Positions 15,512 through 64,000 of a stretch of 64,000 nt of DNA are shown here, piece after piece. Origin of the DNA: Pecten maximus (taxonomy: Eukaryota); the NCBI RefSeq assembly GCF_902652985.1, contig NC_047018.1, forward strand, positions 24,552,001 to 24,616,000, read 5' to 3'. Position 1 is the first letter of the stretch. Each line of letters begins with the position of its first letter. The notes under the pieces were generated by a model. That model was not told the origin of the DNA, did no database searches, and saw only the letters and a list, made by a program, of their open reading frames with translations. Made by a program: the position numbers and the translations under genes.

Positions 15512-16135
15512 AATCACAGTGTGGCATACATGACAGTTTGGCATATATCACAGTGTGGCATACATGACAGTGTGGTATACATGACAGTGTGGCATTCATG
15601 ACTGTGTGGCATACATGACAGTGTGGCATACATCACAATGTGGCATACATGACAGTGTGGCATATATGACAGTGTGGCATACATCACAGTGTGGCATACA
15701 TGACTGTGTGGCATACATCACAGTGTGGCATACATCACAGTGTGGCATACATGACAGTGTGGCATACATCACAGTGTGGCATACATGACTGTGTGGCATA
15801 CATGACTGTGTGGCATACATCACAGTGTGGCATATATATATTAAACTATAGTGTGGCATATATGACTGTGGCATACATCACAATGTGGCATACATGACTG
15901 TGTGGCATACATCACAGTGCGACATACATCACAGTGTGGCATAAATCACTATGTGGCATAAATCACTATGTGGCATACATGACAGTGTGGCATACATCAC
16001 AGTGTGGCGTATATCACAGTGTGGCATACATGACTGTGTGGCATACATCACAGTGTGGCATATATATATTAAACTATAGTGTGGCATATATATTAAACGA
16101 TAGTGTGGCATACATGACTGTGTGGCATACATGAC
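15512..16135. repeat. 17-bp minisatellite
   Basis: Unit gtgtggcatacat(g/c)ac(a/t), ~36 copies; source of several spurious ORFs. Confidence 0.95.
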
Positions 16136-16198
16136 GATGATCTCAATTCATTCGGATTATTTTTTCTCTTTATTACACTTTAATTTCACAATCTAAAT

Positions 16199-22699: not shown

Positions 22700-23220
22700 A
22701 ATTGTTATTTGTCGTGATGAATTAACATCATTTTATGTCATAGTGGATTAACATTTTTTTTCGTGATGGATTGATATTGTTATTTGTCGTAGTGGATTAA
22801 CACTATTCTTTGTTGTGGTGGATTAACGTTGTTCTTTGTTGTGGTCGATTAACACTGTTCTTTGACATGGTGGATTAACGTTGTTCTTTGTCGTGGTGGA
22901 TTAACACTGTTCTTTGTCGTGGTGGATTAACACTGTTCTTTGTCGTGGTGGATTAACGTTGTTCTTTGACATGGTGGATTAACGTTGTTCTTTATCGTGG
23001 TGGATTAACACTGTTCTTTGTCGTGGTGGATTAACACTGTTATTTGTCGTGGTGGATTAACAATGTTCTTTGTCGTGGTGGATTAACACTGTTCTTTGTC
23101 GTGGTGGATTAACACTGTTCTTTGTCGTGGTGGATTAACAATGTTCTTTGTCGTGGTGGATTAATGTTGTTCTTTGTCGTGGAGGATTAACACTGTTCTT
23201 TGTCGTGGTGGATTAACACA
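22700..23220. repeat. 26-bp minisatellite just downstream of the gene A stop (likely 3' UTR)
   Basis: Unit ctgttctttgtcgtggtggattaaca, ~20 copies, decaying leftwards. Confidence 0.92.
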
Positions 23221-23351
23221 ATATCGCCAGCCTTAACACCTTGTATACGTTATGTACTACATGTAATTGACCTTTGTCGTGCTAGACAAATTGACACAAT
23301 GAACCACACTCCATTCCGTTGTAACAAGTCAAGAAAATTAAATCTCCGTTC

Positions 23352-26300
23352 TTAGCAGTTGGCATAGACATTTGCTGTCTCCACGTGGTCTTTCATCACC
23401 GTGTAGCAATACTCATACTGTGCCTAGAAAATGAAAACAGTATCAAAACGTTGAATTATATACATATGGCATTGAAACGACGTAGAATGACCATGTATAT
23501 TAGACGGATTTTCATATATGGTAAATGTTATTTCAACGCTCATGTATTTTCACATTGTTACAAAATACTATATACAGTTTTCTTGTATAGAATGTATCTA
23601 TCTAACAAAACTTAGGGATGTTTGGTTTGTTTTGTTAAACGTCCTGTTAACAACCATGGTCATTTAAGGACGTCCCAGGTTTTGGAGGTGGAGAGACCCC
23701 GGGATACCCGGAGATATAGATAACGGTATAGCTAACGATAAATAGCGATACTACGTATATGTTGTAACAATTTAATGTTACGAATTAGTGATTGTAATGA
23801 AATGGATAATTTTACAGGATCATATGTTGTTTTGACATCTATATACATTGTAAATTGGTATAAAATGCAGAAATAACCTTATTAGGCAGACACTGTGGTC
23901 TTCGGATCTGAAGCTGCCTGACTGCCGCAATGATGTCTATGTCCCCGTCGACCTTCAGGCGTTCCATTACATTACATAGAACACACAACAGTCCGCTGTC
24001 TGTAGCACCATCACTAAAATACATAAATATACATTACCTTTTAGTATTGGCCCAGTAAATACACATTACCTTACAGTATTGGCCAAGTTATTAGTCCGAA
24101 AAATCTTTCACATTCCTGCATAGAAGCTAGAAATCACAGTATGGCATGTAGGAACGATTTTGTCAACGAAACACATTTTACCGCCTATGTGTGCTCGTAT
24201 ACCTAGTGCCTAGATTGGAAATTAAAAATTAACTTTATTAACAGATGTTAACAACATGAGGAACGAGTATTTCAAACTCATTGTACCATGAGTTGAGTAT
24301 CTTTGTATTTCGTACACACTCTCACTACACATTCTATACTTACAGACAGGTAATGACAATGGGTGATGTCGCGCTGTCCCTGAAGGATAGGACTTGTTGA
24401 ATCATATCCAACATCGAATTTGTTGGCGGTACTGTTCCTCCACCATTCCAAGATGAAGTTTCAAGAATGGTTACGGCAGTTTCAGTGGCATTTCTCTAGT
24501 AAGATATAATATTGTATATGATTCATTAAGGCTTATGATATACAGGTATAATCGACCAAAGGAAGTAAGTATATAATCCTACCGACAATTTCCTGATTAT
24601 TATATCGATATCTTCAGTCACTAAACTTGACAATATTGTCCAAGCTGGTTATTCAACTCTATTTTCAATATTTTAGCAGCTTTTTACTTGGGTGTGAGAC
24701 CAAACTTCACGCTTCGAGATTTATTACAGTTTTGAAATATCACCTTGTCTTGAAGTATCATCTTTCTTTGAATCAATACATCAGGCACCATTGCTTTATT
24801 CTGTTTTCCCTCATACTTAAGGGTGAAGTCCCCAAAGGTTTCAACGCGTCCTTCCTCTACAGGCCATGGAATGCAATCCTTAAAATATATAAAAAGTACG
24901 TATTTCTTCAATATATGAATAGAATGCACCTTTAGAATATTTTAGAATTATTATTGTTTGTTAAATAATCACAGCAATTTCCTTGATTGCTCACAACGTT
25001 TGTTGATCAGGTAAGTTATTATTTCCTTTTCTGTATCGTTCAGTATAGAAATAATGTGACATGGTATATATTCATAATAATATTTGATTGTCTTGTACCC
25101 ATAGTGTACCTATCGACTGTACCTGTGGTATACCTATCGACTGTACCCGTGGTGTACCTATCGACTGTACCTGTGGTATACCTATCGACTTTACCTGTGG
25201 TATACCTATCGACTGTACCTGTGGTATACCTATCGACTGTACCTGTGGTATACCTATCAACTTTACCTGTGGTATACCTATCGACTTTACCTGTGGTATA
25301 CCTATCAACTTTACATGTGGTATACCTATCAACTTTACCTGTGGTATACCTATCGACTTTACCTGTAGTATATCTATCGACTTTACCTGTGGTATACCTA
25401 TCGACTGTACCTGTGGTTTACCTATCGATTTTACCTGTGGTGTACCTATCGACTTTACCTGTGGTGAACCTATCGACTTTACCTGTGGTATACCTATCGA
25501 CTTTACCTGTGGTATACCTATCGACTGTACCTGTGGTTTACCTATCGATTTTACCTGTGGTGTACCTATCGACTTTACCTGTGGTGAACCTATCGACTTT
25601 ACCTGTGGTATACCTATCGACTTTACCTGAAGTTTACCTATCGACTGTACCTGTGGTATACCTATCGACTTTACCTGTGGTTTACCTATCGACTTTACCT
25701 GAGGTTTACCTATCGACTTTACCTGTGGTTTACCTATCGACTTTACCTTAGGTGTATCTATCGACTTTACCTGTGGTGAACCTATCGATACCACGACTTC
25801 GACTAGCTGTTGTGACACCATGGACCAGAAGTCTACGACCGTGTTGTGTAGAGGATGCTGTGTCAGGATGTATCCATGTGGGTCTCGGTAGCTCTAAAAT
25901 GTACACGTTTTTATTCTTTTATTTTTTTTGTAATTCTTATATACATGTATATATGCTATTGAATATTTTCATATATTCATTTCTAATTTTTGATTCCACA
26001 AGGATATATGAATTTCTTTCCGTGTATGGAATTAAAAACAAAAGAAACATTAGAAATTAACAACTGATTTCAATTTTCATTTCTTTCATATATAAAGCAT
26101 AAGCAATATATATGATATTGAATAAATTATTATATATATATATATATATAATCAAAATCAACTATATACAACGTTTAAAGAAGGAAATTGATACAGTATT
26201 TTGTATATATTATGGAAGTGTTAATTAATCTGATTTGTCGAATTGTTCAGTATCTGAATTTTTACCGGTACTTTAATTGCGTTGATATAGTTGGATACTG

Positions 26301-27163
26301 TTGAAGGTAGGTACAGCCGGTATTTTTCCACTGTAAGAAACCAAATTTCTTTAATGATACTAAAACTCATACATCAGAAGGTGGCATTTAAGCTACTCTA
26401 TATCAAAATATAAAGTGAACCTGGGTTTAGTTTAACCATACATTTGAATTCCGTTTTAAACAAAACGAAATAAAATTGCACATAAGTTAATAGCATGTAA
26501 CAAACAAATATGGCAGTATTTCATGAACGGTTGATATCTATATTAGCAACTGCTCCATGTAGGTTTCAAACTCCCAACCCAGAGGTGGAGGGCTAGTGTT
26601 AAAAGTGTCGGGACACCTTAACCACTCGGTCACCGCGGCCTCACATATAATAAAACCGTACAATGTACATTATATACATGTATAATAAAGCGCGGAAAAT
26701 ATATACAATTAAGTGTTGAACAAGTTTCTTTCTACTTTACATTCGACAAATAACAAACGATTGGTGTTTTTAATATATTCTTGTACAAACAATCGTATGT
26801 CAACATTATCAGCCTTGTTCATACTATACTCACCTGTGCATCTTTACATGTACGATTTATTGAACATATATTCTGATTATTGATTGATAAGGAAATAATA
26901 AGGAAGATACATTGTATGTATTGTTAATCAATGGTAATAATATGTAGCTCGGATGTTTTATTATTTATATATTACACACTGGCTATGTTACAGTTGTATT
27001 TAAATGTGTTCTTAAGCGAACTTTCACATCACCGTATAAGTAAAAACCTGAAATTGAACTCACCAGCTAAAACTGAGAGATCCTTGTTCTTCCTCTTGTT
27101 AGTTTTATTGAGGGCAGTCTCAACCTCTTTGCCCCCATACGTAGGCCTGTGCCGCTCCAAAAC
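23352..27163 (-). CDS. Gene A PTP domain D2 (pseudophosphatase-type) exons and C-terminus
   Basis: Motifs NYINAIKVP, YILTQHPLHNTVVDFWSMV, PIVITCLDGATDSGL (signature Arg lost), VRQLQIRRP, QYEYCY; stop TAA at 23354-23352 after ANVYANC. Confidence 0.88.
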
Positions 27164-30100
27164 CTAAGATAGTTTTACCTCATACTTAAAACAATAATAT
27201 TCTGTGTTCTCGATTGAATTTTGAAAATCTCATAATTGGTTCAGAAGACGGCATTAACATACAAAATATATCAAATCAGTTAACAACGGTTGTTATGTAA
27301 AGTTATGATAATAACAGAGGTGTTATCTTCCTTGGAATATTTCGTACATTAATTGAATGGTTTGTTGATAATATCTTATAGTACCTCATACTTTACTTTT
27401 TACTTTATTATAATTATTACTAACATTGAACTGTCTTTCGGCTATTTCACCAGCAATCAGTTTGGAGATATTCCTGCTGAAGTCAGTTCCTGTCAAGCCA
27501 TAGGTCACAATGCCAAAGCCCTCAGCCAGAACATCGTGTAAAACCTTGTACTGTTCCTGTAAGTCAAATAATAAGCAAGCCGCCTGTGGGAAATCCCCCC
27601 CCCCCATTTTATCATATATCAGCAAAATCATACTAAAAAACCCATTTTCGGTTATATTTAGCTGTGATATGTAAATTTGTTCGAAATTACATAACACAGT
27701 GATTATATACTAAATATATGCCAATCTATATCATACTATAATTTTTAAACGATATTTTAAAAAAGAACCATTTCATTTATAAAATCATGACAATGTAAGA
27801 AAATATAACAAAAAAAGAATAAATAATTAAAAGTGTACATATGTTTTATATGGATTTGATATAATAGTGATTTTCAGCCCTGTTTCGTATTTACCAATGT
27901 TTGAATCATATTCATTCTACCATTCCGCATTCTTTCAGTGTAACCGAACACGTCGATTTCATCGTTGAGCTTTCCTTCCCTCAGTAGGGCATCTAAACCG
28001 ATGTATGTGCCGGTTCGGCCTATACCAGCACTGTAAAAGATCAATTATGCCAGGACCAATATCCGATGACTGAAGTTTAAAACAATTCACGTATCATTAT
28101 TTATCATTTTAGTTCTACTGATCACAACCGCTGTATTATGCCCGAAGGAGTAGTGAAATAATTCGATATGACAAAGTAGTATATTACCTGCAATGCACAA
28201 TAAGTGGACCTTTCAAGTCTGTCTGACAAGATTCTACCCGTTTGTAAAACTGTAGGAGTTCGAAAGCTTCCGGTACGCCGTGATCTGACCATCTGGTAAA
28301 GTGGTACTGTGATATTTGCCTTTTGGCATTGGTCTGGAAAAATAGTCACATAATAGTAAAAAAAGAAATATTTGGTTTATGCACTCATGCATAACGTTTT
28401 TGTTTGAACTGAATTGTGTATATATCAAATGAACTGCCAAAATCACCTGTTTGTTCTTCACCGATACTTTTCTAATGGTGTAGAATGCGTATGCTTCTTC
28501 CTCCAGTAATGTCACTTGATACAGTCCAAGTTGCAGGGAATCTCCATCTTTTCCCATCCAATAGTTGGCACACTTTTTCTTTAAATAAAAAATGTTGCGA
28601 AGTCTCATAATGATATAATTTCAAATTTCTATTGCTTAAGATGTTTTCCGTTAACCAGTATTCATTTTAATGAACATACTTACAAACCAAGCACTTTAAG
28701 TAAAATTTTGAAGAAAGATAAAATGTTCACGGCTTGTTACAGTGGGCAGTGTTCGCTTAACGGAAACGTTTTCGCTCTTGAAATTATAACATTAAAAAAT
28801 GCTTGTTTAAATGGTTTACAGATGCCAGATAAAAAAAATAAGCCGAATTCCGGAAATGTCTTAATAAAACTGAAAAATCTTTAAAACAACTTTGTAACGT
28901 GGGTTACAACAACTTTGGTTTTCAAACGGTTTTATTGATCGTTTCAAAAAGCAGCAGTATACAAAAATGCGTTCGGCGAATCAAACAGTATCTCGGATGA
29001 GACCGTTGACAAATGGACACACACTGCTCTACCACTAATTGTCGAAAACTCTTCAAAAATGAAAAGCTCTCTTATTTGTTGACAATTGTCCGCGTATCGA
29101 TGCATTGAAATCTATAAAACTTGTGTTCTTTCCGCCTAACACCACTTCTAAATGATAGCCGATGCAAGGATCAGTGTGTGATTGACGCATATTGTCAAAA
29201 TAAACTAAAGAAAATATCTGTTTGGACAACTCAACATATCTCTGTGTGAACGTGGGTTCAAAAGGCATGGCACAATGTCAGCGATTAGTCGAAGTTTTGC
29301 GATGGCGGGTTTTGCTGACAGTTTAACTCGTGTCGAGTTACAATAAGATGGTCCCGATGATGATGTATCCGACTCAGAGGAATTTGAAACCATGAAAAAA
29401 CAGTCACTAATTAGCTCTTTTTAAAGTGACGGTGCAAACTTTGGGCTGGATAAATGTAGGCCTAACTTATATAGACGTACATGTCGGTAGGCTAGCCTAG
29501 ATATATAATACAAGAATGAAATAAGATTTATTTATCAATGTACTCCATATAATATATTAAATTGTATGTCGTTTCGTAAATTATTGCATGTCTGTGAGTC
29601 AAACCGGTAAACACAGTTACATTGAAACCCGGTTATTATGAACAAATTCTCAGAGTCCTCAGCATTTCATTATATCCAGGTTTGACTGTAAAAGCAATTA
29701 CTGAGCCATCCTTGATCAGCTAACGGGTTAACACTAATTATTGCATGAATCTTGAACTAGCTTATAGTTATTGTCATTGATGTAAAAGTGCACAGGGTTT
29801 AAATATTGAACGAAACTAAAATAAACTTGAATTTTCCTATGTAGCGATGACCTTTACCTTTCTAAGCGAAAATGAACGCTGATCATTTTAGGACAGACGT
29901 TATCGACTCTCAACTAATTATTTACCTTTCCAACTTCTACTAAATTTGCAAGCATGATAATTTTTCCGCATTCATTCTGCCATGCCATCCTCCAAAAATC
30001 CTCTATAGTTGTCACTTTAGGGCCTGATTTAGAAAAAGGTAACAATAAGCATAACAATCGAAAAAGTGCGAATCGTTCTTATTTAATTACAAAGTGAAGA

Positions 30101-33100
30101 TATTCTTCTAAAACAAAGCAATATAAATAAAGTCAAGTTAAACATGGAATAAACCATTACAGAAGAAAGAGAGAGAAAAATCTGATGTGTCCTCAAGGAT
30201 CACGATGTAAGCACGATCAAGAATGAGAACAAAAGAACAATTGACATTGTACTGGAGCTTGTCTCACCTTGAGTTGCGATATATGCCTTCACACCTTGTG
30301 TATCCTATAATAAAAATACAATATCAATTACAGCAAAAGGTATAAAAGTACAAAATAGGAAGAACTATTTGTCACCGGTTTGTTGATATTGGTGTTTTTA
30401 AATTTGTTGGTACATTGGTTTTTTAACCGTTTCTTCATACTTTCACGCTTAGAAAAAAAGTTTTAGCAATTATATACCTCTATATAATTAGCGTTGATAT
30501 AGTCGGTGTAGCCTTCCTTCTCTTTCCGTAAGGTAACTCTCGAATGGTCATCTGAAAGGAGGTGAAGGACAGATAATTATTAAAAATTATTCAAATGTTT
30601 ATTCAATCTGTGTCTGAATACTGTTAGTGTAACATGCTAGAGCAAACATTTAACACAGGTAATTGTTTTATCTAACATATCCAAATCTACAGAACAAGAA
30701 AATGTTGTGTGTTATGTGATCTGATAATCTTATTCTGACGCATTTCCTCCCCGAACACGCGGTCTGTAAACCGTCTCGTTGTCTATATTAATTGACATTA
30801 TTGAGGTTGACTTCATAGTAAGGTTTTGTTTATGTTTTTGTATATTCTTGTCCATTATTGTACTATGTACTATGTTTCGTAAAGGAGTCATACTCACATG
30901 CAAACGTTGTCTTGAATCTGTTAAAAATAATATTTTCTGGCGCCTTCGATATGCCGTGTGGATGAATCAAACCATGTGGTAAATTCTATAAACACAATAA
31001 AGATGGTCTGTTCACTGCCTCACTCATTAAATTACTTCCAGGGTCATCCTATTGTTTTTACCGGATTGTACAATATATTGGCATCTTACACTAATATTGA
31101 AAACAGAATACCTTAGCATGTGTTAAACGTGTGGTAAACAGTATCAAACATTATCACTGCTATGTTTGTATTTTACCATATATATGTAATGAAAATGTGT
31201 GATTACTAAGCCTCATTGACAGTCTACCTTCGATTCAGTAAAAATCTGGACCTTGCTTTCGCTTCGTTGTTATATGCCTATCTTGATTTCATTGTAAAAC
31301 GCGCCTTTGCTATGTTTCGTGACATATTTGCCTGGTATTCAGTGATAAATGTGTCGTTTCTATATTTCTTGATCATATTGATGGTTTTGCTTAACGTCCT
31401 ATTAACAGCCAGGGTAATTTAAGGACGTGCCCGGTTTGGAGCGGAGGAAAACCGGCCTACGGTCAGTACCTGGCAACTGCCCCACGTAGGTTTCGAACTC
31501 GAAACCCAGAGGTGGAGGGCTAGTGATAAAGTGTCGGGACACCGTAACCGCGGCATAGATTTTACCAGGTATTCAGTAGTACATATGTTGTTATGCTTCG
31601 TATTCAGTAATACATGTCGTTGCTATGTTTCTTGGTATAGATTTTACCAGGTATTCAGTAGCAATATGTTGTTGTTATGTTTCGTGTCATATTTACCTGG
31701 TATTCAGTGTCAAATGTGTCGTAACTATTCTTCCTGACAACGATGTTATGATGAAGTGTCGGGTCACCTTAACCACTCGACCATTGCGGCATAGATTTTA
31801 CCAGGTATTCAGTATTAAATATGTTGTATGTTTCGTATTCGGTAATAAATGTCGTTGCTATTTTCTTTGTATAGATTTTACCAGGTATTCAGTAATAAAT
31901 ATGTTGTTATGTTTCGTGACATATTTACCTTGTATTCAGTGTCAAATGGGGCGTTGCTATGTTTCTTGACATAGATTACCAGGTATTCAGGAGTAGATAC
32001 TAGTACTTGTATGTTGCTCTGATCTTTTGTGACATATTTACCTGATATTCAGTGTCAAATGTGTCGTTACTATTCTTCCTGACAATGATGTTATGTAAAT
32101 CCGTTACTTTCATCTTTGTGTCGGCACTGACAGGGGTACGTGACGGATTGTTGATGTAAATGACTTCCTCCTCGTCCTCAGCAAACACGTCCGGTATGTC
32201 TCCATGTTTATCTGTATGCACATCACCATGAGTATCTTGTACATTTCCCGGTACTTCTTCCTCTTGGTCGGTATGATTGTTTCCCAGTTCTGCTTCTGAA
32301 GACGCCATGTTGACATATGCCTGGTCGCCTGTTATAAATTCAGCGAGATACCAACGGCGATACCATAATTTACAACTGAATGTAACTCCATCTAACATGA
32401 ATGATACATTCATTAACATTGACACGTACACACACTACCATCTTTACGATATTTATCACCACAAATGGTGTGCATAATTTTCTAACAATGATAAGAAATA
32501 ACTTTTCTAAAGATATGGCCATCCCAATTAAACGGTGTTAAATAGTAATGTATCATTTAAAGAAGCGTCATCGAAGGTCGTTTTATTTTATAATAAGTGC
32601 GTGTTTCGGAATGGTACTTGCTTTAAAAGAAATGTTTCATGCATATCAGAAAGAACATTTTATTACATAATAATTATACGATAAGTTATACGAACCATTC
32701 GTTCTGTCAATTTTGAGTATTCTCTTTTTTGGCTTTCTCGGGATCTGGTCATTTTCTTTGGATGGGATTTGTCGCTTCCTCCTTACAACATCATAATGTT
32801 ATATTAGCCATACAGTAAATTACTTTATTGCATAAAAGGTTTGTCATGTATTAAACTTAACTGAATTTCTTAATCAAATGTTACTATTGGTTCAATTTAT
32901 GAAACGTAGACTATATTATCAAAGACCCCAAGGGAGCCGTAAATCATACAAACTAGATCATAAAAATAGCACACTTATTAAAAGTATTAGCTGTAGCACG
33001 TTCTGTGTTATTCTGCTATAAATGGTACGCATCGTTACTTCAAAAATGTCCGTATGTTTCTAATTTTCGTCTTCAAACAATCATCTATTCAATTCAATCA

Positions 33101-36100
33101 ACTTCTATAACCTTTTCACAATGTTAACGGTTTTTCTTGTTCATTGCTTACCTGACCAGAATAACTGTTATAATAATTATGATGACAATAACCGCAATGG
33201 CTGCACATACCCCGCCAATTATTCCGGCCAATGGAGAAGCGCCTTGTTAACCATATGAAGGTAAATCAATTATGACCAATCATAGGATGTAAATTACGCA
33301 TGATCAACCACAGGTAAATAAATCAATCATAGTCAATCGCAGGAAACTAGATCAATCATGGTCAATCACAGGAAACTAGATCAATCATGATCAATCACAG
33401 GTAACTAAATCAATCATAGTCAATCACAGGTAACTAAATAAATTAGGATCAACCACAGATAACTAAACCAATCATGATCAATCACAGGTAACTCAATCAA
33501 TCATGATCAATCACAGGTAAATACATAAATCATGATCAATCACAGGTAACTAAATCAATCATGATCAATCACAGGTAACTAAATCAATCATGATCTATTA
33601 TAGAAAATTAAATAAATCGTGATCAATTGATTAGCTTTCAATTGGTTGATTATATTACCTATTTGGTATTATTAATGTTTGATTATCACTGAGATGACTC
33701 ATATTTTTCTAATGATCTGTTACACTATAAAATAACTGAAATATGACGTCATAATCAAATGTTCAGATACAGTCAAACTTGTTTCGCAACAATAAATATA
33801 ATACTTACCAAGATGATACACCAACATTGGTATTGTTACTGACATCCTGTATTCGTTTGAGTTGTAATATGTAGGTTTGCTCACCCACAATTCACATACA
33901 AGATTTTGGAAAATTTTGGGATACAGAGAACATTATTGAATTACCTTGGTTATCACCGGGTTGTTGCACAGCCTCTGCAACAAAAAAATGATGTTACGTA
34001 TGGGAACTTCAATTTGTACAGCTCCTTAATATATCACAAAATTCTAAACGTTAACAATAAGCGATATTTCTATTTATTACATGTGAGCAACGTAAAATTT
34101 ATATTTCATTGTAAAAAATAGATTAGTGTATCAAAATATATGGCTGAGTTCTGTTCAAAATATAACCTGCTGCTCAAAATATGAAATACTTGTTTAAGGC
34201 TATATTTTAGGCAATCATTAAGATTTAGAGTTGAAGTTTCAAGTGTAAAATAAATGAATCAATGTCACGTTTCCTGCTTCAAGTAGTCTCTTGTTGACAG
34301 CAGGCAGCAGTAAAATTGAGGGTTGCGAATGTAAATTATACATGAATGTATCATTCCCTGCATCAAGTAGTTTCTTGACAGTACACAATTCCTTTTGCTT
34401 AACATACTATTTTCCACAGAGTTGCATTTGCATAAAAGATTAATGTGATTCAATTATGGGGAGGAATGGGTATGTCTAGCGACACTCAATATACCTGTAT
34501 CACAAGCCGAACCTGTCCAGCCAACATGACATCCTTCTACATTACAGAATCCAGTGAACCTGTCACACCCGGGTGTGGCACAATGACACGTGTGATCACA
34601 GTCACTACCGAATGAGGTGTTATTGCAAGCTGATATAATAAATATGAAAAAAAAATGTATTAGCAACATACCATGAAACATGCTCTTTTGGTTGGTAAAT
34701 ATGATTGTGAATAGACTTTGTTATATATCATAACTAGTGTTAAATTTGAGCGTAACGTTTCGGTAATTGTACTGTCACCTTCATCAGACAAATGGCCAGT
34801 AGGTGGTAATGTACACTTAGGTGTTATTTGTACGGAATAAAATCAACAGATCTTCCCGTCTAAACTATAATCTATCTCTCGTTCTGGTGTAGAACTGACC
34901 TGCTAAGTCGTATCTGGTTGGCTTCCTTAATTGCCTACCGCTTCAAGAAATATAAGTAAAGCGTAGACGAATTGGCTTCTACACATGGCCGAATCGACTT
35001 CTCCTCATACTAACCTAATCTACTTGTATATTGTTTGTCACCTCTTAAATATAGGTAACTTGATGACAATCTCGTACGCATAACACCTAATTGTATTGCA
35101 CATTGCTGTTTACTAGATATTTGTCTGATGAAGGTGACAGAGTACTCACATTATACATAACGCCTAAATCATGTCCTGGTGGTGATATATACCAAGGTCT
35201 ATTCACAGTTAGTAAATGATTTACAAGTAAATGGACATTAAGTTGTGTGTTTGAAATCATGCCAATAGATAGTATATGCATAACTACTTTCAATTTGCTT
35301 TTAATTGATGGAAAGAGGACGAATATATTCACATATTTTAATCACTGGTGTAATTATATTAGAATTGTTTTAATCTCCTCTAAAATTTAGAATGTCATTT
35401 ACCTATATCGCACCTTGAACCTTCCCATCCCATGTCACATCCTGGTACGTTACATTTTCCAATGTTGGCATCACATTCAGAAGTAGCACAGTTACAGGTA
35501 TACTTACAATCTTTACCATATTTACCAACGTCGCATGCTGTCATATACAAATCAATGAATAAGGTAGTCTCACTCTTAATTCCATAAATATATTTGATAA
35601 ATACTTCTATGTTGAAATAAATACATTTATATTGTTCTACTTCTTTTAATAAAAGCACTATACCCAGGTTATAAAGCGAAAGTACAAATGTAGTAAAATA
35701 AAAGATTTTCATATTATTAGATAATATGTGTTACCGCATACAAAATCACAACACCCTTAGTTAACTTAACATTTCTGTGATCTTAAAGTTACATCATGTA
35801 TCTTTTCCATCTCAAAACAACGTACTTCAAGTAATTTCTATCCTTCGCCTCATAACGTTAAACGAAAAAAAAATAAAAAATACAGCAATGAGCTTGTAAC
35901 ATTTTCGAGTTATTAGTATTTAATTAAATATACAACAACGTATATATCATATAAACATGGACCATTGTTATGGGTGATAAGAGTAAACTGAAGGATACAG
36001 TATTACCTTTGTCACAACTCAATCCTTCCCATCCAGCCTCACATCCTGGCCTGGTACATGGTCCACTGAATCTATCACAACCAAGAACGGCACAGTGGCA

Positions 36101-47160: not shown

Positions 47161-47733
47161 TCCATGGCTATAAGAATGAGTTGACATTGCCGATGTTTAG
47201 AAGCAAATGTCTGAATTCATTAGTGTAGAACTCTAGCTGCTGGTCAAAAACAGGAACATGGACTCCACCCTACATAAGTTTGTCACGAACTCAACGACAT
47301 GTGTTTTATCCTCCCATCCGTTTGACGTCCAGGTTAAACTGTAAAACACTTATAAACTACATGATGGTCACTTTCTTATTAATGTTATGACATTCGTATT
47401 TTTTAAACCTCACAACTCCTTATTTGCGCTGACCATTGATGGTTATGTGCTAGACACTGACAGCAGGAACCCGTGTCTTTATTTTCAACAATTTGCTGAC
47501 CTCTTGACGACACAGCGTTATAATTTGAGAACACACTAATAATTCCTATTGTATATTTGTAAAAGATGGTGACTGCAAAAAGGTAATGTTCTCATTATCT
47601 TCTTTGTTCTAATCATCTGATCATGCTATTGTCTTGTGTACTCCTGTTACAAACAGTTTACTGTGATCCAGATTAACATTTCACATATTTTAAGTCTTCA
47701 AAAGTGTCATATTTGTGTAGATCTAAAGCACAC

Positions 47734-53700: not shown

Positions 53701-56700
53701 GAGATTTCCTGTTATAAGTGTAAGGAAGAGAGCTTCTGTTATGAGTGTAAGGAAGAGAGCTTCTGTTATAAGTGTACGGGAGAGAGACTCCTGTTATAAG
53801 TGCGACAACAAACTTATATACCCTTTTCTGAATATAATGCATTCAGTTCCAGTTCTGAACAGAATCAGATCATCTGGCCCTGAAAATTAGGTAATTAAGA
53901 ATTTTACACCACCATATCAATTGAGTTTTCTTACTTGCAAAAACAGGACTGGGTAATTGATTTGTGCTTGTTCAGAATTTACAAAATTCATGATAATGCT
54001 GAGTTAGACATAGGAATTAGATATTTAATCGTCAGAATTATGGTAGCGTTCCTATGTCTGATTTCTATGATTGTCTATTCTTCAAACTAAGTCAATATTA
54101 CCGGCATCGCAAGCATTCCCTTGCCATCCTTCTTTACATTCTGTTACAGTACAATGTCCAGTTTCTATGTTACATCCGGGTGTTGAACAGTGACACGTAT
54201 GGGCACAGTCCGCTCCAAATGTGCCGGGTCCACACTCTTAGATAGGAAAAAGAAAGCAACTTAATACAATAAAATACAATTAAAGATCAAATTTAACAAA
54301 TTGGATTTAAAACTTACTTCTTACTTCAAAACTTCCACTTTCTGCCGGTTGACTTCTTTTGAACAGAATCATTTTATATAACATTTCACCTGTAGAACAG
54401 GATTGTTCCATCCATCCACTCTGACATCCAGTGACGTCACAGATTCCGTTGTCCGGATCACATCCACCCACATCACAGTGACATGTTATATTACAGGCTG
54501 GTCCAAACATGTTAACTGGACATCCTATAAGAAAGAAAAAGTCAAACTATATTTCAATTTTGTCAGTTCATAACAACAAAATTATATTGAATTTATTTGC
54601 CGTTACATTTATTCATAGCTAAATGAAATAATATTTAATAATAAAGGATTAGTTTGTTTTATGAAAATTAGACATGCACGGCAGTATTTATTTACTGATC
54701 ATCATTGTACGAGGTATTACATCAGATAAAATTATAGTGAACATTTATAATTACCATACACCTGAACCTCACATAATTCCACAATAGCCGATGTGCTCGA
54801 GTAGTACATATGAGATTTAGGTCCATTATCAGCTGGTCGTCTGTTATAGAATATGACGTATCGCCCGTCTACTGTACACGGACGTGATTGGTTAAATGAG
54901 GGGAGGACATCTGGGTCCCTTATATTGTCATGGTAACAAAGATGTCCTGTACTTGGTAGATTGTCCACAGCCGTTATATTGGAAACATAGAGATAAAACC
55001 CAGAAAGTCGGAAGGGATCTGAAATAGTATTATTTGAAGATAAAAGATATTGTATAATAATGTGAAATTGATAAAAGAAATGAGTTTCAATTGTACACAT
55101 TATAATGGATCAGTAAGACTACATAACGTAAACATTGATTTAGTTCTTCTTCATAAGATACTGACATCGAATAAACATTGAAGACTACAGTGATATAAAT
55201 ATGTTTGTCTGTTGCTAAGTATAATATTACACCATGCATAACATATTATATATATTAGAGTATCAAGTTATACAAAATAATTTTGCAATTGTTTTATCCC
55301 CATTCATTATGCTAATGATCTAATCATGGTGGTCTCACTTGACGGACTATAAGAATATTTGAAAGTGTGATATCTGTAAGAAAGAGTCCGTAAATTCATT
55401 TTCAATGATAATAAGTATCCTCTCGTCATATTGATTAGTACTTAAACCATATTAACCAATGTTTGGGACTCAAGAATCTATTAATATTTTCAATTTTTCG
55501 TATTTTTTTTTTATCAAAACGACATTCACAACTTTTATATTATTTCTGAGGTCATAAATGCATCCTACATTAAATTCTTCAAAATCATTATTAAATTCGA
55601 TTTGTTACTAAGATATATTATACTACTATACCAATGTAATTTATCTAATATTGTGTTTTTCTCACATTAAGCGCTTTAATCCGATGATGAACCGGCAAAT
55701 TTGTTAAACTGAGCACGAAATGTAATGTTTGTCTATCCTATGTTTCTATGACAATTACTTACACAGCTCTCTGTATGTGACATTTATAGTCTTTATACGT
55801 GATATGTGTTCAAGGTCAACACGCCACCATGCATCACGTGGTGACCCTGTCGTGATAGTAGAACTACAGCTTCCTGTTCCATGCGGTTCTACGTCTTTCC
55901 CTATGACACCATCTACGACCTTGTTAGCACCCCATCCACCAAATTCAGAACTCTGTGATGCCGGCTTTCCTAATGCGATGTTGTCTATTCCAAAAGAAGG
56001 GAACTAAGCAATCAAATGTACATCAAATACTCATTGATATTGTTCTTGTTGATTAAAACCTTATAATAACCAGAATTTGAAATTATTTTATATATCGTTA
56101 TATCTCAACAACAAAGCCGTCTCAAATTCAAACTACATGACTCTTGTCGTGACGTTGACAAGAAAAAAATCCATGTCAGTAGTAGCATCTAATGCAGCGA
56201 GATGTCGAGATGCGACTTCGTAAACGCATTAAATTATCTCGCTATGTCGTTTTATTATCTCGCTATATGGTATATTTATCTCGCTATGTTGACAAAATTA
56301 TCTCGTTATGTGATGGCAGATCCATGCCAAGCTTTTTAAAGAATCTGGTATGTTTTGGCTAGGGGACACAACCCAAAGCCTTCCTCACAGGGGCGAACGC
56401 TCAACTCAAAGTCAAAAATCAGGCATTGTAAGCAAGACAGTAGGAAAAAGAAAGTTGTCAGGGAAGAAGAGGAAAGATCAGGTCCCAAATTAAGTCGCCT
56501 GTTCATCCGCGTACATCCTTCTTGGACTTTTTAAATATACAATATAATGCAGACGTTCCGGTAGTCATGATTATATAATGGATACCTCGGTATCATTTTT
56601 CTCCGCCAGGTTGCGTTCGTGATATTTTTATGTTCGTAGCAATCATCGATGTTGACAAAATTATCTCGTTATGTGATGGCAGATCCATGCCAAGCTTGAA

Positions 56701-59700: not shown

Positions 59701-61749
59701 TCTTGGGGCTCGCCTCTACAATGCAAGTGCTGGGAGGCTAGGGCTGTGTGCCTGAAAATCCAACTCATGTATTAGCTGGGTGTTAATGATGACTGTGTGC
59801 CTGTGTACATAATATGCCAAGCTTTTTTTAAGCGTTTTGATTTTGTAAACATCGCAAACAAGTCATATCGCCCCAAAACAACTTATGTCTCGCAGTGTGG
59901 ACATCGTTGAAATTTCCAATTTCTTGGCATTTCCACATGTTATCGAAAAAAGAAAATCTAATGGCCCTAGTTGGATAATATATGCATCTAATAAAAACTT
60001 TAAAAGTTAAAATTCACACTTCCTGACCGCAGTAACTGCAGCCACGTGAAAAATCAATGAAAAGTTAACTATTTTCTATTAATTACGTTCTTGTTTATTT
60101 TCTTCTGTTATTGTGTTATTATTGTTATTTTGGAAGATATTTGACGACAGTAATCAGTCTTGGGACATATAGGTAAGATAATATAGAAACTTTTAAAAAA
60201 TGTCATATTCCACAAGATGGCCGCTTAGCTCCCCCTTAATAAACATTTGAAAATCAGTGCGGAACCCGATTTACGGATAATCATCCGCGTACATCCTTCT
60301 TGGACTTTTTAAATAAACAATATAATGCAGACGTTCCGGTAGTCATGATTATATAATGGATACCTCGGTATCATTTTTCTCCGCCAGGTTGCGTTCGTGA
60401 TATTTTTATGTTCGTAACAATCATCGATAAGGACAAATTCACATTGTACCTATCTCAGTAGCGATAATACCTATGTTGTCTAGTTTACGTGGCGCAATAC
60501 TTCGGTTTAGCACACAAACAAAGTAAAATTGTACATATACATGTATAGATAAACCGTAGTTTCCGTACATGAAAGTTGGAAAGTATATTCATTGTATAGG
60601 ATGCACGCGAACATGCGTGACTTTTCGTATGTTTTTGAATATTATAATATTTTCATATTTTCTGGCACATAATTTTTACTTGTGTTGACTGATAGATGTT
60701 TATACGATCTTTAAGCTTTGAAATCTCTAGTTTATATTACCAGAATTGAGATGAGAATATATTGGTTCGTTTTTGAAATTGAAAAGATCTGCCTTATTTT
60801 ATTATCAGTTAAATTTACAATTACTGAAAGGTGTTTCTGAAAGGCTCACTCTAGAAAACGACATTATTTTAAAGCATGATGATAATGGACTGTTTTCGTA
60901 AGAGATTACCAATTGGACATTTCTTCAGTAAAGTTTAATATAATTCATTCAGATATTTTATTAAGACAAATGTATCTAGGGTATCTATTTTTCTGAATAG
61001 TGTACACGTGTTAAATAGTGGAAACTAATTATAGATGAGTAATGTTCTTAATGGCTTCAAAATGAAGAGAGTCTACATACAATGTATGGTTTGTCGGCTT
61101 GACCATGCATGAAAGTCTTTATTGTATGTCTATATTTCAAAATATCAATTAAAGCATGGGAAACAGTCGTCTTTTTCGTACAAAGGGTTTCAATAAAAAA
61201 AAACCCCTTGATTGATCAATCTGCAGATACCTCAAGCTATCTCATAGACACTCATGCAATACCCCCCCCCCCCCCCCCCCCCCTCCCCCCTCCCCCTTTT
61301 CGGTCGCGCGATGATATGTAAGGGGTTTCCTATACACGTATAAAGGTCACATTCCATTTGTGATATACACGAAGCTTAACTCCAGTTAGATATCAAATCT
61401 CTCTAAAACGTCATCTCAGTGGTCTGACACGAGCCATATATAACAAACACACAATCTATAAACTACACCCAGATATTACTGCTAATGCAAAATAAAACAT
61501 TCTTGTTTTCTTTCTCTTGTTGGGGTATATATTACGGTCGAAATAACTAGATATTCAATGAAACATATTGTACTCAAATATTATTATCCTGTTGATAAAG
61601 ACTGAATTACACTGATTTATATATGAATATATTCATTTTTTAAATGCTGATTACTTACATGACGAATAAACAAATTCAGGAAATACAGCGACACATCCTA
61701 AGATGATGAAATGCAGGATCCCGTGTTCCCCGTGTATGTAAAATTCCAT
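47734..61749 (-). CDS. Gene B: tandem paralog with F-type-lectin-like + six EGF-like ectodomain and short Tyr-motif (ITAM-like) tail; possibly a pseudogene (in-frame TAG in EGF exon 4)
   Basis: Leader 61749-61659; lectin 55984-55763 and 55018-54755; EGF 54524-54390, 54236-54102, 51857-51723, 51511-51377 (TAG at 51410-51408), 50922-50788, 50525-50391; stalk-like exon from 49523; degenerate hydrophobic segment ~48525-48394; basic juxtamembrane exon 48242-48187 (TKRKNLKSEQSDNEMKYQ); last coding exon 47819-47734 (SLNDNNYDELEASKVGQARNVYDTIAR*). No PTP exons occur before gene A's promoter. Confidence 0.72.
48572..49078. mobile_element. ~500-bp interspersed repeat (SINE/retroposon-like)
   Basis: Second diverged copy at 56810-57340 (shared gctacctcactgaagcatactgccgaagaca, cttacgccctacctgca); (tttgg)n tail. 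Confidence 0.7.
49797..50182. mobile_element. Foldback MITE (almost entirely palindromic)
   Basis: tatggtggcatatttctgccatcgagttgccgacttacgac ... gtcgtaagtcggcaactcgatggcagaaatatgccaccata; arms pair over ~170 bp; TA at both ends. Confidence 0.85.
53420..53802. repeat. 27-bp minisatellite (~14 copies), gene B specific
   Basis: Unit gtgtaaggaagagagct(c/t)ctgttataa; only one unit at the paralogous site ~37965-37990. Confidence 0.95.
56810..57340. mobile_element. ~500-bp interspersed repeat, same family as 48572-49078
   Basis: Collinear similarity along the whole length. Confidence 0.7.
57960..58457 (+). mobile_element. Ty3/Gypsy-type LTR retrotransposon pol remnant (RT connection + RNase H)
   Basis: QEQAYQELKQILMKEPVL..VLRTDASNCGLGAIL..PVAYASKKL..YSVVEKECLAVIWGIQKFSPYLYGRTFVLQTDHRPL..RIMRWALFLQSY..PGRENVGTDYLSRL; degenerate upstream (frameshift and stop). 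Confidence 0.9.
58566..59820 (+). mobile_element. Polypurine tract and probable 3' LTR of the same element
   Basis: aggttgggggtg immediately followed by TGT(T)GTCAGG ~110 bp after the pol stop; right boundary uncertain. Confidence 0.5.
58698..59614. repeat. 44-bp tandem array (~21 copies), apparently within an LTR
   Basis: Unit gtataggggactatagggtgtctcagtcaactcaggtaactcat; period 44 (58701, 58745). Confidence 0.95.
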
Positions 61750-64000
61750 GTTGAAGAAAAAACTAAACAAAGTGTCGCTCTCCTCTATGTTCACCCGCTT
61801 TGACACCAGGAAGTTCGTTGGAGGAGATAAAATCGATTGTGTACATATTAGATATGGTAGTATGTGTGTGTTCACTACACTTTATTATGGTGATACAACT
61901 TTTTATCTTAGACATTTGTGACAAGGTAGATGGTCCATTCTAAATGTATTAAAAACATCTAAGTAGATAAGGTATTACATAAGAGAAAGAAAAAAACCAT
62001 CAGTACATGTGTGGGTATGTTTTGTTTATTAATCACATGCGAGACATAGTGATTAGTGTGAGAACTTGGTAGCTTGGTAAGTATCACGGACTTGTATATA
62101 CTTCATTTCATACAGCTAAAATAACTTATACTGCGTATTTCTACAAAAGAGTTCAATGACACAAACTATATATACATAGTCATATTATGTAAGTTTTCCG
62201 GAATATATGCCGTCGCTGTTTTGTATATGAGGTACATATCTTATACTCAGTAGAATGACCCTCCCATTAACTTTCGGTACCATACTTTTATCTTGGTAAT
62301 TTTCAACTACACACATGTATTAATCTTTCAGTCACATACCTTACCTCAGAGGTAGGCCCCTCCACATTCACTGTAAATATTATATATTTTATCAGAATTC
62401 AGCATTTCCCATCAACTCTAAGATAGTGCCTTCATCTCAGAAACAGACCTCCTCTGTAGCTACCGTAACTTAATCTCAGAAATAGCCCTTTTACATTTTA
62501 AGTTACCTTAATGACTTAACCTAAGCATCCTAAAATTACTAATGACCTTTATCTCATAAGAAGGTACGCCGATAAACTGTTAGTACCCTATCTTAACCTC
62601 ATTACTAGGGTTCTTTTATACCTTTATCGAATGAGTGGGTTAGATGAGTAAGTGTTATTGTTATTTTAACCCTAGTAATATGGACCTACATGTACCATTA
62701 ACTGACATAGCTTTATCGTGGGAGTAGGTAGATAATTTTACAATATGTGTACTTAAAGCTTTGCAGCACTTCATTAAATTTGCCTGAGATAAACGTAGTT
62801 TTCTTTATACTTTTAAAATATGTGGCAGCAAAATAAAACATAGTTTGGCCATGTTTTGGTGTTAGTTCTAAGATGAAGGGAATAACAAAACAAAAAATGT
62901 GAACCATAACTAAGTCGTTGGTGTCTCAAATAATACTGAAGCTATCAAAATTATATAATGATTGGTGATAAGCGATCAGAAAACATAACAATCCATATTA
63001 CCTATTGTAACGTTTTGGATATAATTCTAAACTAGTTATAAGGCGAATGCCCTAGTGGAGTTAAGAAATACAATGTTTATAATTTTCGAGTCATATCTTT
63101 ATATCACTCAATGCACAAAGTACAAATACCGTATGGACGTCAAGCAATATAACCACGTGGACGTTTATTTTGAGCTGTTAAGTAGGGTTAAATACAAAAT
63201 AATACATTACAGTATCGTTTTGTCTGATCAGACGAATACAATTGGAATGATGGCATATTATCATGAGTGTCACATGTATAAATTGACTTATCTCCTTTGA
63301 CCTAATAAGCCAAATATAACAATTCAGAGTCCGAAGCTAGAATGACCATCTACTTGTACCTGTAGAGCCTCCGATATTCCGATACATATCCATGATCTAA
63401 TAAATGTATTGATACCGAAATCATAAGAAACAGTACACAGATCACACGAATATTAAAACAGAAAATCATATCAACACATATTTCCTATGGAGTAAGTAAA
63501 AACATAGGAATCCAAGTATCATTTTCTTGTTTACATCCATTTTCATCAAAGAAATAATCTTATATTCACGGTGGCTAGATATATCTTCTTCAACGGAACA
63601 TTGACACTGCTACTTGCTCGACACAAAATGAAATAATAAATAAAACCAAATTGCTTGGCAACCTTAATGTATTTCATTTATTTGTAACTGTTTACATCAA
63701 TAAGATATGTGATATGGCATAATCATAAACTCTTGAAGTAAAGCGATATTGAAAGTTGAAGCCATTAAATAGTCCATGTATGTTCAGTCGTAATGTGTAT
63801 AATAGTTTACAAATAGTTCTTTACACAGTCCAGAAGATTTCAAATAAGCTTTAGACAACAACGACGCAACAATTCAACATTCAATGATAATCAATAGCAA
63901 ATATCTGATGGAAAGTAAGTTTACACAAAAGTAAACAATTAAAAAGAAAATCATGTAGCTGATACAATTCGTAAAACAGAAGCCATGGAATTCATTTCAG
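60735..64000. repeat. Segmental duplication copy 2 (gene B leader exon, promoter and 3' flank of a presumed third paralog)
   Basis: Collinear with 43670-47160 up to the window edge. Confidence 0.93.

Follow-up and report, generated by a model that had tools for sequence, protein, structure and literature searches.

The 64,000-nt stretch of Pecten maximus DNA analysed here (the window) is, as read from its sequence, a minus-strand tandem array of type-I receptor genes, and appears to be the downstream end of a birth-and-death array with units of about 16–17 kb. In each array unit a leader precedes an F-type-lectin-fold domain encoded by two exons, which is followed by six exons for MEGF/Draper-type EGF repeats. 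The product would be a type-I surface receptor with a signal peptide, and its lectin-fold domain lacks the canonical fucose motif. In the B-type copies (B, C, D and E) the EGF repeats would be followed by a short stalk, a transmembrane (TM) helix and a juxtamembrane stretch of basic character, and the last exon, which is conserved, carries two tyrosines 15 residues apart. A, the last gene, would be an old lectin-EGF receptor tyrosine phosphatase (PTP) in which domain D1 looks active and D2 is degenerate; its part from promoter to EGF5 was probably overwritten recently by a B-type unit via unequal crossing-over or gene conversion. We hold with moderate confidence that the locus is an array of paired tyrosine-tailed and phosphatase-tailed receptors with A overwritten in this way, and that the phosphatase member may set a signalling threshold in a working model given below.

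The original prediction that A and B have a promoter region, leader, two-exon lectin-like domain and six EGF exons in common was borne out by nucleotide matches. Identity is 85.6–89.2%, introns included, between 35397-39258 in A and 50782-55080 in B, while the Lec1 region (39345-40364 vs 55083-56126) matches at 72% and EGF6 (34491-34671 vs 50387-50568) has only 77% nucleotide identity. Similarity ceases at the EGF6 donor, and the 3' ends beyond it are unrelated, as had been described. The 3' flank of B indeed recurs at the right edge of the window, at 88–94%, in a block that also carries the leader exons of A and B (Table 1). A further B-type gene had been predicted upstream; reading on in the genome gave copies C, D and E, each with the tail exon of B, that of C lying just beyond the window end. 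C and E appear intact: none of the 13 exons is missing, their lengths agree and their borders are AG/GT; D is broken, as are A and B, and copies F and G are fragments. A second Pecten cluster comprises the tyrosine-tailed genes I and H and, 12 kb downstream on the same strand, the phosphatase-tailed gene J.

Table 1. Features of genes A and B and of the repeated flank, in window positions.
Feature	Positions	Strand	Basis or remark
A leader (signal peptide) exon	44579..44669	-	tblastn and exon mapping; GT donor
A lectin exon 1	40018..40227	-	AG/GT borders, open frame
A lectin exon 2, broken	38927..39193	-	alignment of seven copies; 267 nt
A EGF1-EGF5 exons	38694-38560, 38428-38294, 36486-36352, 36141-36007, 35537-35403	-	span 35403..38694
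A EGF6 exon	34495..34629	-	apparently old part; recent shared tract stops upstream
A TM exon	33152..33242	-	hydrophobicity scan, sequence and phase check
A juxtamembrane linker and PTP D1 exons, span	27422..32329	-	PF00102, orthologue mapping, motifs
A linker/D1 exons, first four	32329-32042, 30985-30899, 30549-30478, 30024-29926	-	
A linker/D1 exons, last four	28611-28429, 28366-28190, 28044-27895, 27571-27422	-	
A PTP D2 exons, span	23358..27163	-	Pfam, orthologue mapping, motifs
A D2 exons, first four	27163-27038, 26352-26266, 25890-25771, 24908-24744	-	
A D2 exons, last three	24495-24346, 24012-23821, 23420-23358	-	
B leader exon	61659..61749	-	same as RefSeq model P0158 N-terminus
B lectin exons 1 and 2	55984-55763, 55018-54755	-	span 54755..55984
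B EGF1-6 exons	54524-54390, 54236-54102, 51857-51723, 51511-51377, 50922-50788, 50525-50391	-	span 50391..54524
B stalk exon, 44 nt	49480..49523	-	tblastx conservation B vs E
B TM exon, 83 nt	49156..49238	-	conserved
B basic juxtamembrane exon, 56 nt	48187..48242	-	matches RTKRKK-type stretch in P0155, P0156
B last exon	47734..47819	-	tyrosine motifs, then stop
Repeat of 43653-47164	60718..63999	.	B promoter/leader region and 3' flank of next B-type gene, C

The leader of A is 93% identical to that of B at the amino acid level. Lectin exon 2 of A carries three frameshifting 1-nt insertions (at about 39090, 38981 and 38962) followed by an in-frame stop, and the RefSeq model P0019 (158 aa) terminates in this shifted frame. 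Five EGF exons of 135 nt each, phase 1-1, and EGF6 lead to a TM exon (acceptor AAG/, donor AG/GTAAGC) that is specific to A and unrelated to the TM exon of B. Linker and D1 exons were mapped with Ylistrum P0171 and Argopecten P0166, and exon translations were searched with PF00102. The resulting Y_phosphatase matches behind the TM helix agree with the predicted architecture of TM plus D1 and D2: E values reached 1e-10 on D1 exons, and were 7e-4 and 5e-3 on D2 exons (19.7 and 17.0 bits, under the 20.9-bit cut-off). The HC(X5)R signature of D1 is intact (VHC/SAGIGRTG across an exon junction) and its WPD loop reads WSD, giving the domain an active look; D2 lacks the P-loop arginine and is therefore probably inactive. 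The cytoplasmic part is closest to that of Ylistrum P0171 (60% identical; D1 exons 80–85%). Gene A thus has the domains of a receptor PTP in an interrupted frame, and its cytoplasmic part is a tandem PTP rather than a short ITIM-type inhibitory tail.

In B, EGF4 contains a GAG>TAG change at 51410-51408, where the RefSeq model P0158 (361 aa) terminates. Neither this stop nor the three insertions in A figured in the original prediction, which also omitted the conserved stalk and TM exons of B. The stalk exon turns phase 1 into phase 0 and its splice sites are kept in B, C, D and E; the TM sequence recurs in copies C, E, H and I and in the orthologues P0155, P0156, P0161 and P0010. The juxtamembrane and tail exons had been assigned to B, and their AG/GT borders and compatible phases uphold this: in the in-silico model, phases 1-0-2-1 link EGF6, stalk, TM, juxtamembrane and tail exons, and the orthologous RefSeq models of Mizuhopecten, Ylistrum and Argopecten are spliced from EGF to tail in the same way.

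The tail of B, anticipated as YxxL-x11-YxxI, reads YDEL-x11-YDTI, as do those of C and D. In the in-silico model the motif is cytoplasmic, lying behind the TM exon and the basic stretch. A relaxed ITAM consensus (two YxxL/I motifs with 6–12 residues between; classical spacing 6–8) matches B, C, D, H, I, P0156, P0161, P0010 and P0168; among random 50-aa tails with this composition, about 2% match it by chance. Copy E (YDTT) and the Mizuhopecten orthologue P0155 (YDTG) fail it, so the second motif is not always YxxI/L; its +3 residue is I, L, T or G across the family. The predicted ITAM stands as two YxxL/I motifs within the relaxed range, but its spacing of 11 (10 in P0156) lies outside the classical one and its second motif departs from the consensus in E and P0155. 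The tyrosines themselves, as the ITAM reading supposed, are conserved in other copies and species: both are retained with their spacing in 11 tails of four genera (P0156 spacing 10), the tail being found in paralogues and three further scallop genera. These comparisons support a tyrosine tail that is cytoplasmic, conserved and correctly spliced, and that follows a genuine TM exon. Both motifs double as YxxPhi sorting signals.

Between A and B, C or D, dS is 0.10 in Lec1 and 0.11–0.16 in EGF1-5, whereas EGF6 of A differs from that of B-E by 0.72–0.92. This sharp step at the EGF5/EGF6 border indicates that sequence from a B-type neighbour recently replaced the ectodomain of A: by sequence divergence, the 5' part through EGF5 is recent and EGF6 onward is old. 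In the tree of lectin domains, a phosphatase-tailed protein groups as sister to a tyrosine-tailed one of the same genus in Pecten (A and B, 98/92), Ylistrum (P0171 and P0156, 99/87) and Ostrea (P0170 and P0187, 99/41). The tail label needs 8 changes over 21 labelled rows; the PTP label likewise needed 8, where shuffling gave a mean of 9.0. Several of the models in the databases are incomplete, which leaves some tails unlabelled. An AU test rejected a clade of A and P0171 (p = 0.0007), a group named after inspection of the tree. The ectodomain tree across bivalves called for in the original prediction thus has the two kinds of gene pairing repeatedly within species. Ectodomains (72–76% amino acid identity within species) group by species and tails are orthologous across species, the pattern of concerted evolution, and since the same ectodomain sharing between tail types is seen in Ylistrum, Ostrea and Argopecten, evolution of the two tail types as pairs is well supported. 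Recombination between neighbours in the array could also have produced the shared ectodomains as a side effect. The predicted paired receptors accordingly stand as neighbouring genes whose ectodomains closely resemble each other and whose signalling tails differ, but the frames of A and B are interrupted in the reference genome.

A doubtful, though serious, alternative is that pairing has no function. The locus would then be a fast-turning array of MEGF-like scavenger or phagocytic receptors beside a receptor phosphatase, with ectodomains shuffled accidentally by unequal crossing-over, many pseudogenes (A, B, D), and YxxPhi endocytic or lysosomal sorting signals instead of an ITAM. LAMP-type sorting signals have their motif near the C-terminus, and the second scallop motif lies two residues off it in LAMP-like fashion, with the variable +3 residue noted above. 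Of the five most complete copies, three carry lesions, F and G are fragments, and RefSeq searches found no protein for either C or E, the copies that look intact. No NPxY (CED-6/GULP) motif occurs in the tail exon translations of B and no EMI domain in P0158, P0155 or P0156 (Pfam: F5_F8_type_C, F5_F8_type_C_2 and EGF_STAB1-2 alone), which argues against true Draper orthologues. Against accidental shuffling, pairing repeats in scallops and an oyster with both tails as open frames in RefSeq models, and dN/dS of 0.2–0.5 in Lec2 and the EGF exons points to constraint on the ectodomain. Conservation of the tyrosines, of the acidic residue at +1 and of the 15-residue distance between the tyrosines is also stricter than a sorting signal requires.

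The lesions of A and B might instead be assembly errors or null alleles of one haplotype, both genes being functional in most animals. Polymorphism is high in bivalve genomes, the three insertions in A total +3, and EGF4 (135 nt) and lectin exon 2 of A are phase 1-1 with lengths that are multiples of three, so that skipping either keeps the frame. The insertions lie outside homopolymer runs, however, and we regard this explanation as rather unlikely. It is compatible with the opposing and with the cooperating model.

In the preferred reading of opposing receptors, B-type receptors would be clustered by ligand, a Src-family kinase would phosphorylate both tail tyrosines, and a Syk/Shark-type tandem-SH2 kinase could dock on them; an oyster ITAM receptor co-precipitates with CgSyk, a two-SH2-domain protein (PMC6994640). 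The A-type partner, binding the same ligand, would be drawn into the cluster, not excluded from it, and would strip the phosphates, setting a threshold. With A and B broken in the reference, any function would have to come from other alleles or from copies without lesions, for example the apparently intact C and E. CD45 has an established positive role in antigen-receptor signalling, and a CD45-like cooperating pair, in which the phosphatase member would prime Src-family kinases by taking off the inhibitory phosphate at their C-terminus and the shared ectodomain would bring this activator to the ligand-engaged ITAM-like receptor, fits the catalytic signature of D1 and explains the shared ectodomain by co-recruitment equally well. 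We consider it distinctly improbable: a bulky transmembrane phosphatase in Drosophila is kept out of active, ligated Draper clusters (PMC6219719), and the sole described Draper counter-isoform, Draper-II, shuts off Draper-I using an ITIM and the phosphatase Corkscrew (PMC4503800), the sequence itself being compatible with an activating as well as a dampening direction.

Like Draper, CED-1 and MEGF10, the scallop genes encode candidate type-I receptors with repeated atypical EGF domains, and their relatives are named draper-like, CED-1-like or MEGF10 by RefSeq. Both tails are short with two YxxL/I motifs, and the Draper ITAM tyrosines that bind Shark, Y934 and Y949, have the same 15-residue distance (PMC6219719). 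Draper too has activating and phosphatase-linked versions of one ectodomain (PMC4503800), but these are splice forms whereas the scallop versions are separate genes, and Draper recruits its phosphatase through an ITIM whereas the scallop phosphatase is built into the receptor. The scallop tail is about 50 residues long, and the F-type-lectin-fold domain takes the place of EMI. Vertebrate paired receptors (KIR, LILR, SIRP, Siglec) resemble the scallop genes in being adjacent, with near-identical ectodomains and different signalling ends, in having ectodomains homogenised within species and tails orthologous between species, and in forming tandem arrays rich in pseudogenes. They differ in having Ig or C-type lectin instead of lectin-EGF ectodomains, an activating member that pairs with an adaptor where the scallop B type has its own tyrosine motif, and inhibitory ITIMs in place of tandem PTP domains. 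The molluscan lectin-(EGF)-RPTPs in RefSeq (Argopecten P0166, Ylistrum P0171, Ostrea P0170 and C. gigas 'RPTP epsilon' isoforms) have the domain order of A, which differs in its interrupted lectin exon 2 and in a 5' part apparently copied recently from tyrosine-tailed neighbours. No functional study of this family came up in the literature searched.

Glycan-based recognition, also proposed originally, is not supported, since the canonical fucose-binding motif, H-x24-RxDx4(R/K) (PMC5712786), was absent from ten family members by regular-expression search. Where the motif has His, A, B and the relatives closest to them have Ser, and the site reads CSST in B. The domain is nevertheless predicted to have the F-type jellyroll fold. 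Lectin exon 1 of B matched F5_F8_type_C_2 (E 4.6e-05) and F5_F8_type_C (E 4.3e-04), both under the curated cut-off. The top PDB matches of the AF2 model of P0158 (pLDDT 88) were 3cqo, 2j1r, 3lek and 1k12, so that the F-type lectins eel AAA (1K12), striped bass FBP32 (3CQO) and pneumococcal SpX modules resemble the predicted domain best, with target-normalised TM-scores of about 0.8 for single-domain matches and 0.44 for the two-domain 3CQO. The EGF repeats, six 135-nt phase 1-1 exons with PF24887 matches, form an atypical (laminin/MEGF-type) array.

The gene arrangement seen in the window, a lectin-EGF ectodomain joined in gene A to tandem phosphatase domains and in gene B to a tyrosine-motif tail, is real, and it extends beyond what was originally noticed. 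Self-comparison of the window (C4:24552001-24616000 of the 918-Mb P. maximus genome) aligned 35397-39258 of A with 50782-55080 of B at 85.6–89.2% nucleotide identity, introns included. Further blocks matched at 72% (39345-40364 and 55083-56126), 77% (34491-34671 and 50387-50568), and 88–94% identity (43653-47164 and 60718-63999). From a repeat at the right edge, the original prediction had expected another B-type gene. When the reading was extended 80 kb past the window, the full gene, C, was found together with more copies, which rules out that the edge repeat is a mere copy of A's upstream region along with B. The unit of approximately 16–17 kb recurs there as copies C, D, and E, followed by the fragments F and G. 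Copy F has its lectin exons plus four EGF exons; downstream of it, neither type of tail could be recognised. Every gene discussed for this array lies on the minus strand.

Features of the array, the second cluster, and associated repeats (window or window-continued numbering unless a chromosome is named)
Feature	Coordinates	Strand	Basis or remark
A leader exon	44669-44579	minus	tblastn and splice check
A TM exon	33242-33152	minus	hydrophobicity scan, sequence check
B leader exon	61749-61659	minus	tblastn and splice check
B stalk exon	49523-49480	minus	44 nt; added to the originally predicted model
B TM exon	49238-49156	minus	83 nt; added to the originally predicted model
B juxtamembrane exon	48242-48187	minus	originally predicted
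B tail exon	47819-47734	minus	originally predicted
Copy D	81344-93607	minus	window-continued
Copies G and F	125113-134369	minus	window-continued; G has leader, two lectin exons, and EGF1 only, and adjoins F
Second Pecten cluster	C4:23093600-23410300		same chromosome as the window; genes I, H, J, K
24-nt tandem array	25093-25790
Minisatellites akin to the 24-nt array	884-1308, 6641-8112, 15506-16139, 22692-23222, 31524-32095, 33246-33627, 53415-53802, 58696-59614
Dispersed repeat	48601-49075, 56870-57338, 56333-56506, 60281-60437		about 78% identity

The ectodomains of A and B were modelled by exon-by-exon tblastn and splice checks. In both genes, the leader is followed by two lectin exons and six EGF exons of 135 nt in phase 1-1. 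Pfam searches with single-exon translations identified F5_F8_type_C_2 and EGF_STAB1-2, as well as Y_phosphatase on the exons of A from 30078 down to 23842. Mapping of Ylistrum and Argopecten proteins yielded 14 cytoplasmic exons of A, down to 23358. The first phosphatase domain, D1, retains VHC|SAGIGRTG and the Q loop; D2 lacks the P-loop arginine. The WPD loop of D1 reads WSD in A (28190-28366), with the catalytic Asp kept and Pro replaced by Ser; WPD is intact in Argopecten P0012 and in the Pecten genes J and K.

At the 3' end of B, the two originally predicted exons proved correct, with AG/GT borders and fitting phases, and the model now also includes a stalk and a TM exon. Both were located by a hydrophobicity scan, alignment of B, C, and E, and tblastx of B against the divergent copy E. 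Phases are 1 after EGF6, 0 after the stalk, 2 after the TM exon, and 1 after the juxtamembrane exon, and AG/GT occurs at every border in B, C, and D. In copy E, alignment places the acceptor of the TM exon 15 nt upstream of the automated border, and the stop codon marks the end of the tail exon. A hydrophobic stretch at about 48.4 kb was rejected as the TM exon of B because, unlike the exon chosen, it is not conserved in E or in the distant paralogues H and I. RefSeq orthologues join EGF, stalk, TM, juxtamembrane, and tail exons identically, which lends indirect support to the predicted splicing of B. The juxtamembrane exon of B contains a YQN site (Grb2-type YxN) that also occurs in Mizuhopecten P0155 and Ylistrum P0156; C, D, and E have NQS instead. 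In Mizuhopecten yessoensis, the RefSeq and GenBank models P0151 and P0002 share the TM exon and then run into another end of 33 residues lacking tyrosine motifs, which differs from that of the adjacent P0155 on the same scaffold; a model error, read-through of an intron, or use of an alternative last exon may account for this.

When the genome was searched in six frames with the tail exon as query, the matches were B, C, D, and E as well as H and I, two multi-EGF genes 1.4 Mb off that have a TM exon of the B type. Because the search returned six matches only, this count of tail-bearing genes is a lower bound. The tail reads YDEL-x11-YDTI in B, C, and D, YDEL-x11-YDTT in E, YDSL-x11-YDTI in H, and YEGL-x11-YDTI in I. 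The corresponding motifs are YDIL-x11-YDTG (P0155) and YEGL-x11-YDTI (P0168) in Mizuhopecten, YEEL-x10-YDTL in Ylistrum P0156, and YEEL-x11-YDTI (P0161) and YDGI-x11-YDSI (P0010) in Argopecten. Across these 11 tails, the two tyrosines, the acidic residue at +1, and the spacing vary little or not at all, and nine tails carry I or L at position +3 of the second motif. Loss of the tyrosines elsewhere would have spoken against the original prediction; both are kept in other copies and scallop genera. Tails of oyster relatives read YxEL-x7/8-Yxx(L/I). As an ITIM (S/I/V/LxYxxI/V/L), the second tyrosine motif fits Ylistrum P0156 (SIYDTL) only, and this assignment was discarded.

Neither gene within the window has an intact reading frame in the reference genome. 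The RefSeq models that correspond to the two genes reproduce the exon translations obtained here. Compared to six other copies, lectin exon 2 of A has three single-base insertions (~39090, 38981, and 38962), all outside homopolymer runs and followed by a stop, and the RefSeq model of A, P0019 (158 aa), terminates in the shifted frame. EGF4 of B carries GAG>TAG at 51410-51408, where its RefSeq model P0158 (361 aa, named 'Tie-1-like') ends. Since both lesioned exons are in phase 1-1 and have lengths that are multiples of three, their skipping would, speculatively, preserve the frame. Copy D has a frame-shifted leader, lacks lectin exon 1, and has a 2-nt deletion in the TM exon; it is a predicted pseudogene, and the protein encoded by its tail exon is identical to that of B. 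In C and E, 13 out of 13 exons are open with conserved lengths, and no RefSeq protein for either copy was found among the Pecten proteins in the length ranges searched. RefSeq models of these scallop genes are split or truncated, and several copies are pseudogenes.

In lectin exon 1, dS between A and B/C was 0.10 (D, devoid of that exon, was left out). Compared to B, C, and D, values for A were 0.11–0.16 in EGF1-5 and 0.72–0.92 in EGF6. Values for lectin exon 1 and EGF1-5 agree with those among B, C, and D themselves, and that for EGF6 exceeds even the dS between B and E (0.49). The cytoplasmic part of A is closest to Ylistrum P0171 (60% overall and 80–85% in the D1 exons), compared to 53–54% for Argopecten and about 45% for oyster proteins. 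Thus, A is an old lectin-EGF phosphatase gene in which a B-type neighbour has recently supplied a new promoter-to-EGF5 part. The unit diverges most in and around lectin exon 1 (40018-40227 and 55763-55984), where nucleotide identity is 72% versus 85–89% elsewhere. dN/dS was 0.2–0.5 in lectin exon 2 and the EGF exons, and 1.1–1.3 in lectin exon 1 among A, B, and C, the latter from small counts and with two of the three copies broken, which points to a binding half that is either diversifying or under relaxed constraint.

Proteins with lectin, EGF repeats, and tandem PTP domains are predicted in Argopecten, Ylistrum, Tegillarca, Ostrea, Saccostrea, Crassostrea, Mercenaria, and Haliotis. In a maximum-likelihood tree of 41 lectin domains, phosphatase- and tyrosine-tailed proteins form within-species sisters: Pecten A and B (support 98/92), Ylistrum P0171 and P0156 (99/87), and Ostrea P0170 and P0187 (99/41). 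Argopecten P0012 falls within the clade of P0010 and P0161 (100/99). Ectodomain identity within species is 72–76% at the amino acid level. The same longest contig for both members suggests that the Ylistrum pair resides on one scaffold (2,059,041 bp) and the Ostrea pair on one chromosome (98,268,724 bp). Among 21 labelled rows, 8 changes of tail label are required; for the PTP label on the 41-domain tree the figure is 8, against a mean of 9.0 after shuffling. A clade of both scallop phosphatase genes was rejected by an AU test (p = 0.0007); this group had been named after inspection of the tree. The tree of lectin exon 2 only (90 columns) had too little resolution to yield further independent pairs. 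A bivalve ectodomain tree had been proposed as the evolutionary test of pairing, and the within-species pairs bear it out. In the second Pecten cluster, the phosphatase-tailed gene J lies 12 kb downstream of the tyrosine-tailed genes I and H (B-type TM, YxxL-x11-YDTI tail), on their strand. Gene K, a two-lectin phosphatase gene on the opposite strand, has stop codons in its lectin exon. The gene order matches that of the window, with the tyrosine-tailed array first and the phosphatase gene at the 3' end.

An AF2 model (pLDDT 88) gives the N-terminal domain an F-type lectin fold. The best PDB matches were 3cqo, 2j1r, 3lek, and 1k12, with TM-scores normalised to the target of about 0.8 for single-domain matches and 0.44 for the two-domain 3cqo. 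The F-type lectin fucose motif, defined as H-x24-RxDx4(R/K) (PMC5712786), is absent from the domain. RefSeq labels the relatives draper-like, CED-1-like, or MEGF10. No EMI domain was found in the family and the NPxY motif is absent; the family is not a Draper orthologue.

A hallmark of immune recognition in vertebrates is the pairing of receptors that activate with receptors that inhibit; to our knowledge, few invertebrate examples have been described. The locus is a concrete invertebrate candidate that recurs across species and has a counter-receptor with its own phosphatase, and it bears on the setting of ITAM signalling thresholds prior to ITIM/SHP systems. No description of a lectin-EGF ITAM/phosphatase pairing was found in the literature searched. 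In Draper, the ITAM tyrosines Y934 and Y949 lie 15 residues apart; Src42A phosphorylates them, Shark binds to them, and ligated Draper clusters exclude a bulky transmembrane phosphatase (PMC6219719). Draper-II has an ITIM and uses Corkscrew to stop Draper-I signalling (PMC4503800), and co-precipitation with CgSyk has been shown for an ITAM receptor of an oyster (PMC6994640). If the analogy holds, a Src and Syk-type cascade would act downstream of B-type receptors, and an A-type receptor with the ligand of B would be pulled into the cluster and erase phosphotyrosines there. Tentatively, and with considerable doubt, we propose a bivalve paired-receptor system independent of the vertebrate ones, in which recurrent gene conversion keeps the lectin-EGF ectodomain common to a Draper-like ITAM receptor and a receptor tyrosine phosphatase. 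As both arms share the ectodomain, the ligand itself, rather than ITIM recruitment, would bring the inhibitory arm to the ligand-bound cluster; if true, kinetic-segregation logic would be inverted. The sequences favour the evolutionary pairing, and the opposing function is putative: the phosphatase member may instead play a CD45-like priming role, or the two tyrosine motifs may be sorting signals in a decaying array.

Several repeats accompany the genes. The 24-nt tandem array begins at the donor of a PTP D2 exon, with one frame open for 273 codons, and akin minisatellites occur across the window. The dispersed repeat is located in the TM-juxtamembrane intron of B and again between lectin exon 1 and the leader of B; it recurs in copy C and is probably a mobile-element remnant.
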